Assembly (NCBI RefSeq): GCF_020745735.1
Contig: NC_083433.1
Span: forward strand, 12,721,363 to 12,785,362
Direction: 5' to 3'
Origin: Hemiscyllium ocellatum
Lineage: Eukaryota
Length of the DNA stretch: 64,000 bases
The position numbers were made by a program, and so were the translations under genes. Position 1 is the stretch's first letter. The number at the start of each line of letters is the position of its first letter. The notes under the pieces were generated by a model. That model was given only the letters and a program-made list of their open reading frames with translations, did no database searches and was not told where the DNA came from. Below are positions 2,911 through 60,092 of this stretch, piece after piece.

Positions 2911-3010
2911 CAAAGACTGAGAGATAGGAGGCAGTCAGCTCTATGTTAATCTGTTTGTTAACAGCAGCTTCACAATCCTGGTGATAGTTTTGACAAACCT
3001 GGGAGGCCAT
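2911..3010 (-). pseudogene. Disabled ferritin exon 1 (exon 1a, proximal to copy 1)
   Basis: Reads [30 protein letters not shown], then a 2-nt deletion (CTCTCAGTCTTTG vs CTCTATCAGTCTTTG). The donor is destroyed (TTG/GGAGT instead of TTG/GTGAGT or GTAAGT). Confidence 0.85.
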
Positions 3011-3074
3011 TTTGTTAATACAATTCCTAAATAACAAACTCCCTCTCTTAAAAACCCACTATCATGGAAATTGG

Positions 3075-3225
3075 ATTTATACTCTAGGAGCAGGCCCACA
3101 ATTTATTAAACAGGAAATGACATCAGTGATGCCAATCACTCTTGCTAATCACGCAAAAAGCTAGCATGTCCGATCGGATTCCAGTCAGCACAATATGGGA
3201 TCTTGGGTCTCATGAGCCAATCAGA
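3075..3225 (-). promoter_or_regulatory. Promoter of exon 1a (TATA, ETS/CRE-like, CCAAT)
   Basis: TATAAAT at 3075-3081 (minus). CAGGAAATGACATCA and two CCAAT boxes, homologous to the other copies. Confidence 0.6.
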
Positions 3226-10845: not shown

Positions 10846-10954
10846 TTTTTTTGATGAAAACAATGCTACTTTCCTCCTCAAACCAATTCAAAGCCCAACC
10901 ATAAACTTAGGACAAACACCAACAATATCTAGAACAGTACTACCTTTGAATTTT

Positions 10955-11100
10955 TATTTATACCCAAGGTGCAGACTCTTAGTTTTATTAAACAGGAAAT
11001 GACCTAATCAGTGATAGCCAATCACTCTTGTTAATCAGTTGATCAGCTGCCATGTCCAATCAGCGCAGGATGGGAATTGGATCCAGCAGCCAATCAGAAT
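10955..11100 (-). promoter_or_regulatory. Promoter of orphan exon 1b
   Basis: TATAAATA at 10955-10962 (minus), CAGGAAATGAC, three CCAAT boxes. Confidence 0.65.
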
Positions 11101-14472: not shown

Positions 14473-19611
<5,139 letters not shown>

Positions 19612-19714
19612 TTTGTGACAAATTATGGCACTACTTACCCACTCAAGTCAAAGGCCAACCACAAACTTAGAATTGCCACCAATTCTACCTAAATCATCAG
19701 AGCCTTTGTACTTT

Positions 19715-19860
19715 TATTTATACTAGAGGAGCAGACCTGATTTTATTAAGCAGGAAATGACATCATCAGTGATGGCCAATCACTCTTGTTAATCAATCGA
19801 TCAGCTGCCATGTCCATTCAGCGCAGAATGGGAATTGGATCCAGAAGCCAAACAGAATTG
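19715..19860 (-). promoter_or_regulatory. Promoter of copy 2
   Basis: TATAAATA at 19715-19722 (minus), CAGGAAATGACATCA at 19751-19765, CCAAT at 19776-19780. Confidence 0.65.
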
Positions 19861-20042
19861 ACAACTGGTGGATGATGAAATTAGTGATTGACCTCTGACA
19901 CAAGTGCAAATTCTCTAAGTATATCTACCTAAAAATGAGATTAAAACATACTCTGAAACTTCACTATCGTATTTGAGCTTGTGTATTAAGACAGGCTGAA
20001 AACAGATTTGAAGAATTTTGTCAGTTTGTTACTCCGAGGGAT

Positions 20043-20365
20043 TTAGATTAGATTAGATTAGATTACTTACAGTGTGGAAACAGGCCCTTCGGCCCAACAA
20101 GTCCACACCGACCCGCTGAAGCGCAACCCACCCATACCCCTACATTTACCCCTTACCTAACACTACAGGCAATTTAGCATGGCCAATTCACCTGACCCGC
20201 ACAGCTTTGGACTGTGGGAGGAAACCGGAGCATCCGGAGGAAACCCACGCAGACACAGGGAGAACGTGCAAACTCCACACAGTCAGTCGCCTGAGTCGGG
20301 AACTGAACCCGGGTCTCAGGCGCTGTGAGGCAGCAGTGCTAACCACTGTGCCACCGTGCACACGG
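20043..20365 (-). mobile_element. Young HE1-like SINE upstream of copy 2 only
   Basis: CpG-rich, with a (TAATC)n tail. Interrupts GAGGGATTTGTCTTCC, which is intact in the other units. Confidence 0.9.
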
Positions 20366-28705: not shown

Positions 28706-28816
28706 TTTCTCTCAAGTATTGCACTACCTGCCCACCCAAGACAAATCACAGAACAAGAACAACAAACTTAGAATTAACCACCAACACTACCTAAATCATC
28801 ACAGCCTTTGGACTTT

Positions 28817-28960
28817 TATTTATACTCCAGCAGCAGACCCTCATTTTTATTAAGCAGGAAATGACATCATCAGTGATGGCCAATCACTCTTGTTAATCAT
28901 TCGATCAGCTACCATGTCCATTGAGTGCAGAATGGGAATTGGATCCAGAAGCCAATTAGA
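28817..28960 (-). promoter_or_regulatory. Promoter of copy 3
   Basis: TATAAATA at 28817-28824 plus the same conserved module. Confidence 0.6.
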
Positions 28961-42443: not shown

Positions 42444-42535
42444 TTTGCAACAAATATTGCACTACTTGCCTCCACAGGAGGACCACAAACTTAGACTTAC
42501 CACCAACTCTACCTAAATCATCACAAACTTTGGAC

Positions 42536-42680
42536 TTTTAATTATACTCCAGGAGCAGATTTCATTTTATTAAGCAGGAAATGACATCATCAGTGATGGC
42601 TAATCACTCTTGTTAATCAATCGATCAGCTGCCATGTCCATTCAGCGCAGAATGGGAATTGGATCCAGAAGCCAATTAGA
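42536..42680 (-). promoter_or_regulatory. Promoter of copy 5
   Basis: TATAATTA variant plus the same conserved module. Confidence 0.6.
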
Positions 42681-46311: not shown

Positions 46312-51216
<4,905 letters not shown>

Positions 51217-51311
51217 TTTGCAACAAATATTGCACTACTTGCCTACACAGGGCAACCACAAACTTAGAATTACCACCAACTCTACCTAAATCATCACAGC
51301 CTTTGGACTTT

Positions 51312-51450
51312 TATTTATACTCCAGGAGCAGATTTCATTTTATTAAGCAGGAAATGACATCATCAGTGATGGCCAATCACTCTTGTTAATCAATCGATCA
51401 GCTGCCATGTCCATTCAGCGCAGAATGGGAATTGGATCCAGAAGCCAATT
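51312..51450 (-). promoter_or_regulatory. Promoter of copy 6
   Basis: TATAAATA at 51312-51319 plus the same conserved module. Confidence 0.65.
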
Positions 51451-54400
51451 AGAATTGACAACTGTTCAATGATGAAATTAGTGATTGACCTCTTACACAA
51501 GTGCAAATTCTCTCAGTATATCTATCTGAAAATGAGATTAAAACATACTCTGAAACTTCACTATCGCATTTGAGCTTGTGTATTAAGACATGCTGAAAAC
51601 AGATTTGCAGAATTTTGTTAGTTTGTTACTCTGAGGGATTTGTCTTCCTACCTTTTGAATGACAGTGTTGGGAGTCCATTGAAAAATGGTTAGATTTTGT
51701 TGACATTAAACATTTGCCTATTGATTGACTGTGACAGAAATGCAGTGCTTTTGGGTCCTAGTGCAGGCAACTGATGTACATTGTGGATCCATTCTGAATC
51801 TGCTGTGATCTCTTTGACCTTAGGTCTCAGGAAGCCCAGTTTAAAACCAAAACACTAAATGTGCTGAGTGTGTCAGCCATATAGTAGGCCTCAGGCCTCC
51901 ATGTTTAAATTGTTGTTAGAAACATACTGCATGATTAACTTTTCAACTCCATGTTCAGTTTCTAATTGTTTCAAGAAGAACTAGCCCTCAACTCAAGGAT
52001 GTTTCCAAGTGGAGAGATTCTGATTCTGTTTACATTGTATTCTGTCGAATGTCCAGCTCAGAAAGTGGTCTCCCAACCCAATGTGGTCCATACGCACATC
52101 TATATGGACATGAGAGTATCTCAACCTAAAGTTGAATGTGTTGAACTGAGCAGCCTCCAGTGGAATGGTGGGCTGTGAGAGTTTGGGGATTGAAGGTGCC
52201 CACTCAATGTCACAGCCTTGACGGATGGATTGGTGGAAGTAAGTTACTTTGACCCAGTATCTGATTCAAATACCAGGTTACAGTGTAGCCATTACTTGTC
52301 GGATTGAGTTACAAGTTTGAGTATTATACATGGAACCACGGTCAGAGGTCAACCCTGATAAATATTCATGGTGATGAGAGTAAGTCAGAGGCTGGGAATT
52401 CTGTTGTGAATTTCTCAACTCCTGACTTTCCAAAGCATCTCCACCATCTACAAGACCAAAGTTAGGAAAAGTGGTGGGATACATTCCAATTTTCTGGCTG
52501 AATACAGCCCCAAGAACACTGACGGAGCCCTAGGGAAATCTCTCACCATCCTGAGTTGGAACAATATCACTGTTTCTGAATCCAAGTCCTGGACGCCCCC
52601 CCCTCAGCAGCAGCAGCAGCAGCAGCAGCATCTGGTCTCTCCCACACCAGGTGGGTTGTAATAACCAGCTCATCACCATCTTCGGTAGGGTAACTGCGGC
52701 TGGGCACGAAACGCAGTCTTCTGATTGGCACACTGAAGATTGACCAATAAAAACCACACTGTGATGGGGGAGTGCAACACTCGAGCAGCATAGTCTTAAA
52801 GTGGGAGGGGAAAGATTAAAAATAGGGATGTGAGGGGCAACCGTTTCAGAGAGAGGGTGCTGTGTACATGGATTGAGCTGCCAGAGGAAGTGGTGGAGGC
52901 GGGTACAATTATAACATTTAAAAGACATTTGGACGGAGACATGAATGGGAAGGTTTTAGAGGGACATGGGCCAAATGCAGGCAAGGGCAACTGGTACAGT
53001 TTTGGAAATCTGATCGGCATGGACAGGTTAGACCAAAGGGTCTGCTTCTGTGATGTATGACTCTATGACTCTACTGGTGTGCAACAGCATGTTTCATTAG
53101 GATGGTGTGGTGGCTCAGTGGTTAGCACTGCTGCCTCACAGCGCCAGGGACCTGGGTTTGATTCCAGCCTCGAGTGAGTGAGTGTGTGTGTGTGCGCGCG
53201 TGTGTGTATGTGGTGCTCTCCCTGTGCCTGTGGGGGTTTCCTATGAGTGCTCCAGTTTCCTTCCACAGTCCAAAGATGTGCAGGATCAGTGAATCGTCCA
53301 TAGGAAATGCAGGGTTAAGAGGATTGGGTGGGTCTGAACAGGATGCTGTTCAGATAATTGGTGCAGACTCAATGGGCTGAATGGCCTCAGCCTGCACTGT
53401 AGAGAGTTTGTCAGCATGACCTGATTGTTTACAATAAAAGGTTTTACATTGTGGAATAAATATGTTAAGGACCTAAACCCTCCATAAAGGCCGCAGTGTA
53501 TGCTCACTACAAAATTCACTCAAACAATCACCAGGACAGCCCCCTCCCTTAACCCACGCTCCCTGAAACCCCAAAGATAAAGGAGCAGCTGTAGAGGAGA
53601 GTCAGTATCTCCAGGTTTCCTTTCAGAAGGACAGCACTCTCCAACTTGGAGAGAAATCACTGCTCCTTCAACATCACTGGGTCAAATCAAACTGCAGCAG
53701 GAGAATCCTTCAGCACATGGGAAGCTGGGAGGAAGCTAGGATCAGCTTGGACTGTAAACTACTGACTTTAGCAGCAAGAGTAAATCAGATGGAAGCATCT
53801 AACCTCAAGCATTGCTGTTGTTCCCAGATCACAGTCATTCTGCTCTTTCAGCTGTAGGTGACGATGAGAGCATGTGTATTAATTCAGTGCAGCTCAGGAG
53901 AATTTCTTCAGCTGCCTCCCAGGAATGTGTGTCTACAGGGAAGGTTTGCAGTGAATGATCCCAGCTCTGGGTGGGCAGGTATGAAGATTATTGAAAGTGC
54001 TGGAGCGGTGTTAGGAGTGAGTCTTCAGACAGGGAGGTACACAAAATTGAGGGAGATACAGTAAGATAGCATTGTTACTGCTAGGAAAAGCTCCCCCCTG
54101 GTGTGGATTGACTCCTTGTGGTGGTAGAATGGGTATTTAATCAAGGTACTCATTGGGAGCTGCATGTTTGACTCAGACTGCAGAGAAATGAACCAGTCTA
54201 CATACCCCACTGTTAATGGCTGCAACAAGGCAAGGTGTGAAGGTCACAGGCCCCCTGCTGGTCTGAACCCCAATGGGCTCCTAAGGCTGGGCTCAGAGGT
54301 AAAAGAAAACAGTAGAATTTAGAATATCCTGGTCATGTTAGAATTCCCTGAGTAGCTATACCAGGGAAATTGAGATCGTATCATTAGCTGGTTCCACTAG

Positions 54401-59846: not shown

Positions 59847-59953
59847 TTTGTGACAAATATTGCACTACTTGCCCACCCAAGACAAGCCACAGGCCAACCA
59901 CAAACTTAGAATTATCACCAACTCTACCTAAATCATCACAGCCTGTGGACTTT

Positions 59954-60092
59954 TATTTATTCTCCAGGAGCAGATTTGATTTTATTAGGCAGGAAATGAC
60001 ATCATCAGTGATGGCCAATCACTCTTGTTAATCAATCGATCAGCTGCCATGTCCATTGAGTGCAGAATGGGAATTGGATCCAGAAGCCAATT
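59954..60092 (-). promoter_or_regulatory. Promoter of copy 7 (TATA box mutated)
   Basis: AATAAATA in place of TATAAATA; rest of the module conserved. Confidence 0.55.

Follow-up and report, generated by a model that had tools for sequence, protein, structure and literature searches.

The window analysed here, the whole 64,000-nt stretch of the epaulette shark (Hemiscyllium ocellatum) genome, contains seven copies of a ferritin exon 1, all on the minus strand, as determined by BLAST of the copy 3 exon against the window. Their initiation codons are located at 3010, 10845, 19611, 28705, 42443, 51216 and 59846 (copies 1–7). Mapping of the exon peptides defined the repeat unit as a four-exon ferritin gene with a period of ~8.7 kb. 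Exon 1 of copy 3 opens with ATG ACT TCC CAG, and the coding parts of this gene are as follows:

19510..19611, minus strand: copy 3 exon 1, 34 codons, closing at a GT donor
16255-16109, 15422-15297 and 14628-14473, minus strand: copy 3 exons 2–4, same four-exon gene as exon 1

The protein predicted from gene 3 matches XP_060705501.1 (‘ferritin, middle subunit-like’, Hemiscyllium ocellatum) at every residue, and a PF00210 ferritin domain is precomputed for this protein and its relatives. Intact 176-codon frames with consensus splice sites (GT/AG) are found in the genes that start at 19611, 42443, 51216 and 59846, i.e. for four of the seven exon-1 copies. No complete copy has lost any of its three introns; hence the array is neither intronless nor derived from retrocopies. 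Exon 1 of copy 3 lies between two copies of a SINE-like shark repeat (18900-19190 and ~20040-20360).

The other three exon-1 copies (3010, 10845 and 28705) belong to damaged or incomplete units. Exon 1 of copy 1 (3010-2921) has suffered a 2-bp deletion which breaks the frame and a 6-bp deletion which takes out the GT donor. That of copy 2 (10845-10744) is intact but orphan; it lies, with its promoter, 7.8 kb upstream of copy 1 exon 1 and could in principle be spliced to exons 2–4 at 1426-93, a combination predicted to give an open frame of 176 codons. Copy 4 (ATG 28705) has an in-frame TGA in exon 4 (23899-23897) in place of the Cys codon of the LCDF motif, and other unusual replacements (FDWDD, LYQL) were noticed in the same copy. 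Judged by its sequence, copy 4 is a pseudogene, yet its promoter and leader resemble those of the other copies. Finally, one set of exons 2–4 (34339-32583) is complete but has no exon 1 before the next gene and thus constitutes a partial repeat unit.

The ferroxidase centre of the array product is incomplete: E62 is replaced by Lys (in SQEKQEH) and Q141 by Glu (in DEEVE), while the other five residues (E27, Y34, E61, H65 and E107) are kept. Because of Lys62 and Glu141 in this site, the array subunit is neither a classical H chain nor a classical L chain. No signal peptide and no 42-aa insertion were found in the product (176 aa, MASQVCQNY... start) upon alignment to H ferritins.

Search for iron-responsive elements upstream of the array genes

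IRPs repress ferritin translation by binding to a cap-proximal iron-responsive element (IRE) in the 5' leader. The initial annotation of this locus had placed a TATA box ~65–115 nt upstream of the ATG and had reported that no exon-1 leader contains CAGUGN, the loop sequence of the IRE. Both observations were borne out: the TATA-like boxes start 71–119 nt upstream of the ATG, and the 400 nt preceding each of the seven initiation codons contain no CAGTG on the gene strand. The stretches are:

3011..3081, minus strand: copy 1 TATA-to-ATG stretch, TATAAAT at -71, no IRE
10846..10962, minus strand: copy 2 TATA-to-ATG stretch, TATA at -117, no IRE
19612..19722, minus strand: copy 3 TATA-to-ATG stretch, TATAAAT at -111 (first base 19722), predicted leader of ~80 nt, no IRE
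28706..28824, minus strand: copy 4 TATA-to-ATG stretch, TATA at -119, no IRE
42444..42546, minus strand: copy 5 TATA-to-ATG stretch, TATAATT at -103, no IRE
51217..51319, minus strand: copy 6 TATA-to-ATG stretch, TATA at -103, no IRE
59847..59961, minus strand: copy 7 TATA-to-ATG stretch, AATAAAT at -115, no IRE

The nearest CAGTG sequences on the gene strand were found at -424, -626 and -737, then at -1305 or further, and none of them is in an IRE-like context. The absence of CAGTG from ~770 nt of leaders is by itself statistically unremarkable; on the basis of 5-mer frequency, ~1.8 occurrences are expected by chance in 7 × 110 nt, and the copies, being related, do not count as independent.

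The accepted features of an IRE are a CAGUGN hexaloop, with a C14-G18 cross-loop pair and an A15 G16 U17 triad, and a bulged C8 located exactly five base pairs below the loop, followed by a lower helix (PMC8466369). Two types of search were carried out, one with the Rfam 15 covariance models RF00037 (IRE_I, gathering threshold of 34 bits) and RF02253 (IRE_II), the other with our own hairpin scan, in which a CAGUGN or UAGUAN loop, a 5-bp upper stem (one mismatch allowed), a bulged C and at least three of five lower pairs were required. Neither IRE_I nor IRE_II was detected by Rfam anywhere in the 64-kb window, whether at the gathering score or at E ≤ 10, and rescanning 19480-20200 (copy 3) and 51100-51650 (copy 6) alone with laxer filters did not reveal any IRE either. 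The hairpin scan gave zero IRE matches on the gene strand over the 64 kb, the UAGUAN alternative being also absent, and with relaxed loop classes it returned nothing within 400 nt of any ATG.

Two candidates were considered and rejected. The first was AAGTAGTGC, which has the look of a decayed CAGUGC loop and could have been the vestige of an IRE; it has no flanking stem, and alignment of the leader with the canonical 5' UTR scored no better than the shuffle mean. The second was an IRE-like CAGTGA hairpin (GCTGC TAGTC CAGTGA CATTG CAGC) which occurs in intron 2 at six plus-strand positions (15830, 25185, 33922, 38938, 47668 and 56448). It lies antisense to the genes, its closing pair is mismatched and its stem is rich in G-U pairs; Rfam does not call it at E ≤ 10, and the whale shark does not have it. 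It is probably a chance motif that was copied along with the repeat unit.

The start codons of the array are in a good context, with A at -3, and with G at +4 in six of the seven copies. A minimal upstream reading frame (ATG ATT TAG; 19683-19696 in copy 3, and equivalents) was noticed in copies 3–7, where its ATG is 26–34 nt past the first T of the TATA box; it would therefore sit at or before the predicted transcription start.

Iron-responsive elements of the ordinary shark ferritin H gene

The absence of an IRE from the array is meaningful only by comparison with the canonical ferritin H gene, in which the same tools detect this element. The ordinary ferritin H of sharks, annotated as ‘ferritin heavy chain-like’ and bearing a HEEREH motif, was recovered by a full-length protein search. 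The H. ocellatum protein, XP_060705664.1, is identical to Chiloscyllium plagiosum (bamboo shark) XP_043535518.1 at 175 of 177 positions, and its gene and the array share one 50-Mb sequence. Exactly the bamboo-shark protein is encoded by four intron-less, cDNA-like ENA contigs, each of which displays an IRE_I match (42–42.6 bits) ~23 nt from the contig 5' end and ~88 nt before the ATG. In the genomic copy of the canonical gene from the whale shark, IRE_I (42 bits) lies 100 nt upstream of the ATG and is preceded by CCAAT and AATAAATA. The cDNA is colinear with the genome along the whole canonical leader; this places the ferritin IRE within exon 1 rather than in an exon further upstream.

The highest score, 46.6 bits for IRE_I, came from an unrelated ferritin represented by a Logan transcript contig, and all the control IREs were also detected by our hairpin scan. 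Rfam found no IRE match in two other contigs, one from Logan (L002) and one from ENA (L007) that encodes a lungfish-like protein and starts within the apparent 3' half of an IRE; L007 is thus truncated and carries no weight as a negative. The premise of the initial annotation, that vertebrate ferritin mRNAs usually carry a 5' IRE, thus holds for bamboo- and whale-shark ferritin H, both above threshold, and the scan with Rfam IRE models which it had suggested as a check left the window without IRE_I or IRE_II where the controls scored 42–46.6 bits. In sharks, the ordinary ferritin H has retained its IRE; the lack of this element is a peculiarity of the array.

One oddity surfaced among the matches to shark ferritin H: a 125-aa protein, MBS2599738.1, recorded as ‘ferritin, partial [Salmonella enterica]’ and encoded on a 405-nt contig, clusters with it at 90% or more. 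The bacterial assembly behind this record seems to have been contaminated with vertebrate sequence.

Conservation of promoters and leaders

Sequence conservation upstream of the ATG was analysed within the window and between species. The elements of the conserved block are:

19723..19990, minus strand: copy 3 promoter block, with CCAAT at 19838, inverted CCAAT at 19780 and TGATGTCA at 19765
19765, 28869, 42589, 51362, 60004 and 3125, minus strand: TGATGATGTCAT, ~40 nt upstream of the TATA box

The promoter block of copy 3 is 90–95% identical among the copies and 76–92% identical to the whale shark. Among window copies 2–7, the region from -350 to -151 displays 90–95% identity, matching that of exon 1 (95%), whereas the TATA-to-ATG stretch is only 74–85% identical and the level falls below 65% beyond -400. 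The comparison of epaulette with whale shark yields the same picture: identity is 88–92% for the promoter (-230 to -131), 92% for exon 1 and 68% for intron 1, and in the leader it drops from 72 to 48% toward the ATG.

The conserved block contains CCAAT, one or two inverted CCAATs, TGATGTCA, TTCCTG and the TATA box. The near-invariant TGATGATGTCAT is present in the whale shark and in a second family of shark ferritins (the E62 family, see below) as well. Its reverse complement contains TGACATCA, which we take to be a Jun/ATF-type site, and TGATGATGTCAT is a candidate for a key element of the promoter.

No conserved structure came to light in the leaders, another possibility that was considered besides the IRE. 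They fold no better than shuffled sequences (MFE z-scores from -0.15 to -1.1), and folding of the leader alignment revealed no compensatory pair and a consensus energy of only -5.6 kcal/mol. Local alignment of every leader with the canonical 5' UTR scored at or below the shuffle mean, so that no residual similarity could be detected. Since the promoter is conserved like exon 1 while the leader diverges, the pattern has the signature expected of a functional promoter directly upstream of a leader without a conserved RNA element.

Related ferritin genes in other sharks

Whale-shark orthologues of the array family were found as three tandem genes on one genomic sequence and a single gene on another. 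All four have a TATA box at -99 to -114 and none has a CAGTG within 400 nt upstream of the ATG. In the 31 kb of the whale-shark array, no IRE was detected by Rfam and no hairpin by the pattern scan. The initial annotation had singled out an upstream exon bearing an IRE as the observation that would speak against its proposal; no IRE-like hairpin was encountered on the gene strand of either the 64-kb window or this 31-kb array.

It appears that the K62 lineage, defined by Lys62 and Glu141, is a shark one: all 72 of the 72 K62 proteins fetched are from sharks, and they are distributed over Orectolobiformes, Carcharhiniformes, Lamniformes, Heterodontus and Heptranchias, i.e. five shark orders. 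Tandem arrays of K62 genes are present in both the epaulette window and the whale shark.

A second amplified family of shark ferritins keeps E62. Its whale-shark representatives are three tandem copies (NC_063368.1:16845658-16864180), with a TATA box at -75 and, in one copy, a stop in exon 3; no IRE was found in any of the three. The promoter core ATTGG...TGATGATGTCAT...GGAGTATAAATA is common to the K62 array and one of these E62 copies (best pair z = 9.6), and the remaining two align more weakly to the K62 promoter (z = 1.3–4.3). Neither the K62 nor the E62 promoter resembles the canonical ferritin H promoter by alignment. Because the E62 array is also devoid of an IRE and shares its promoter core with K62, these data suggest, short of proof, a single loss of the IRE that preceded the divergence of the two subunit types.

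Interpretation of the ferritin array

The reading we favour, with a probability of about 0.8, is that these tandem K62 ferritins, peculiar to sharks, are expressed from their own compact promoters through short leaders without an IRE and thereby escape IRP control. The array would represent a tandemly amplified, intron-containing ferritin lineage, restricted to sharks and marked by Lys62, in which each gene is presumably transcribed from its own CCAAT/TGATGTCA/TATA promoter. With a transcription start predicted ~30 nt past the TATA box, the leader would be ~70–90 nt long, weakly structured, fast-evolving and IRE-less. No IRE in the leader means that IRPs would have nothing to bind; the cap-proximal translational block would then be inoperative and repression by IRPs could not take place. 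The output of the array would be set by promoter activity and gene number, in keeping with a specialised role, probably in the ovary or the oocyte. That the copies are expressed is suggested by the existence of RefSeq models and, by analogy, by what a preprint reports for a Greenland shark cluster.

The initial annotation went further and proposed that translation is uncoupled from iron status. Uncoupling from IRP control is well supported by the sequences, and we would call translation of the array IRP-independent; ‘iron-independent’ is too strong because iron could still act on the promoter. Its other proposal, that the family is controlled mainly by transcription and has a non-housekeeping role, is of an inferential nature and fits the unconstrained leader, the conserved promoter and the ovary expression given for the Greenland shark in the ferritin passage of the preprint (10.1101/2024.09.09.611499).

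The alternative that fares best modifies this explanation more than it opposes it. The genes could escape IRP control and nevertheless respond to iron or oxidants through their promoters, for example via the conserved TGATGTCA, a putative bZIP-type site. Mammalian ferritin genes do respond to oxidants through bZIP elements, and TGATGATGTCAT, the inverted CCAAT and GGAGTATAAATA form a core that is invariant in most copies and, at least for the best pair mentioned above, common to the K62 and whale-shark E62 arrays. However, the site differs from the consensus of the antioxidant-response element (TGACnnnGC), and strong alignment is limited to one of the three E62 copies. We consider such a promoter response unlikely, albeit with a real chance of applying.

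It could also be argued that the array is mostly decaying DNA, in which case the missing IRE would reflect erosion of pseudogenes and have no regulatory meaning. The broken copy 1, the orphan exon of copy 2, the premature stop of copy 4 and the exon 2–4 set devoid of exon 1 are all in line with decay. Against it, four genes have retained 176-codon frames and consensus splice sites, exon 1 is conserved at 92–95% when intron 1 is at 68–88%, and between species the promoter is conserved at the level of coding sequence. Moreover, the lineage persists in five shark orders, RefSeq models exist, and the preprint, in the part that deals with ferritin, reports ovary expression of the equivalent cluster in the Greenland shark. 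Erosion as the general explanation is thus improbable.

Slightly lower still is the credence that we give to a non-canonical IRP-binding site, or some other iron-sensing RNA element, missed by the scans. From sequence alone, IRPs may conceivably bind to the leaders in a non-canonical manner: AAGTAGTGC is kept in copies 3, 5, 6 and 7, with AGGTAGTGC in copy 4, and a small cap-proximal hairpin (8 bp with a GGUG loop) recurs in several copies. But no C8 bulge, 5-bp upper stem or AGU pseudo-triloop is present in the right context (features as in PMC8466369), and the absence of compensatory changes, the consensus energy and the shuffle-level MFE described above all speak against a constrained fold. 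The motifs are not retained in the whale shark, where the leader is 48–72% identical, and no leader has similarity to the canonical 5' UTR. An element of this kind is therefore highly improbable.

Last, an upstream non-coding exon carrying an IRE, or a true mRNA start located further upstream, which would make the TATA-proximal stretch just a portion of the leader or the end of an intron, is very unlikely: although the TATA-based transcription start is only predicted and a TTTAG|G readable as an acceptor occurs ~30 nt past the TATA box in copies 3–7, the gene strand of the 64-kb window is free of IRE hairpins of either the canonical or the UAGUAN type, Rfam is negative in 31 kb of the whale-shark array, CAGTG is absent up to -400, beyond which the copies lose similarity, the CCAAT/TATA block adjoining the leader has the hallmarks of a promoter and is conserved across species, and the canonical gene holds its IRE in the exon 1 that contains the ATG.

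A broader reading can also be put forward, tentatively and with somewhat less than even odds. Beside the ordinary ferritin, sharks would possess a second ferritin system that is independent of IRPs, with hundreds of genes devoid of an IRE. These would encode subunits of two types: E62, which is H-like and catalytic, and K62, which is L-like and non-catalytic. Both would stem from one ancestral gene in which a compact CCAAT/TGATGTCA/TATA promoter already stood in place of the IRE-containing leader and its promoter, and the system would allow large-scale production of ferritin in the ovary or oocyte, making it the vertebrate equivalent of the yolk ferritin of invertebrates. This proposal is supported by the lack of an IRE in the whale-shark E62 array, by the shared promoter core and by the ovary expression related in the ferritin passage of the preprint.

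The ferritin 5' IRE is among the most conserved post-transcriptional switches in animals. Here, an intron-containing family of dozens or hundreds of copies, present in several shark orders, has dropped this switch, and the ordinary gene on the same chromosome retains it. The array thus offers a natural experiment on the purpose of IRP control; it suggests how sharks may supply iron to large yolky eggs and, together with the K62 change, points to an independently evolved ‘light-chain-like’ subunit. There is also a consequence for annotation, since array genes labelled ‘heavy/middle subunit-like’ could be wrongly assumed to be iron-regulated.

Comparison with other ferritins

The canonical ferritin H gene (XP_043535518.1, Rhincodon typus XP_020377123.1 and XP_060705664.1) resembles those of the array in having four exons, with the ATG in exon 1, and in encoding a Pfam ferritin fold; the proteins are ~68% identical, both types of gene have a proximal promoter of the TATA/CCAAT type and they share a chromosome. 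They differ in that the canonical leader, of ~146 nt, contains a textbook IRE_I, whereas those of the array are ~70–90 nt long and IRE-less. Furthermore, the array genes have no similarity to the canonical one in leader or promoter sequence, specify Lys62 and Glu141 and exist in many copies.

Few vertebrate ferritins are known to be without an IRE, FTMT and FTHL17 being examples, and FTHL17 is intronless, as is FTMT. FTMT is a retrocopy-like, intronless gene that is not under IRE/IRP regulation; FTHL17 has the Glu62->Lys change, lacks ferroxidase activity, is expressed in germ cells and is multi-copy in mouse (PMC7760355). The shark array has in common with FTHL17 both E62K and the lack of an IRE, and a gonad bias is apparent for sharks from the ferritin passage of the preprint. 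In contrast to FTMT and FTHL17, the shark genes keep three introns, arose by tandem duplication of DNA and have reached a far higher copy number, and their products are without a mitochondrial presequence.

Outside vertebrates, the yolk ferritins of the snails Lymnaea and Biomphalaria have a 5' UTR without an IRE, which was read as a lack of iron control, and serve in yolk provisioning (PMC10799875). These proteins possess a signal peptide and a 42-aa insertion, whereas the shark ones have neither. The snail ferritin is reproductive; for sharks, an ovarian role is reported, as far as the preprint's ferritin passage goes, only for the cluster of another species, the Greenland shark. In a chiton, ferritin isoform 2 is IRE-less, exists beside an IRE-bearing form and was read as constitutively translated (PMC7850002). 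The IRE-less chiton form results from an alternative transcription start of one gene, whereas the shark genes constitute a separate amplified family.

A further parallel comes from sharks themselves. According to the ferritin passage of the Greenland shark genome preprint, that genome contains 155 copies of ‘FTL’ and 179 of ‘FTH1’, the majority of them grouped in three clusters, which are conserved with the great white shark, are at least 250 My old and display ovary-specific expression (10.1101/2024.09.09.611499). That passage is silent on leaders, promoters and IREs, and our targeted literature searches on shark ferritin leaders and IREs found nothing specific. The epaulette shark is outside the analysis as presented there; at the gene level, the Greenland and great white shark clusters are the same phenomenon as the array described here. 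The array thus consists of IRE-less ferritin paralogues, a kind of gene already known; its unusual features are the presence of introns, the massive amplification and the great age.
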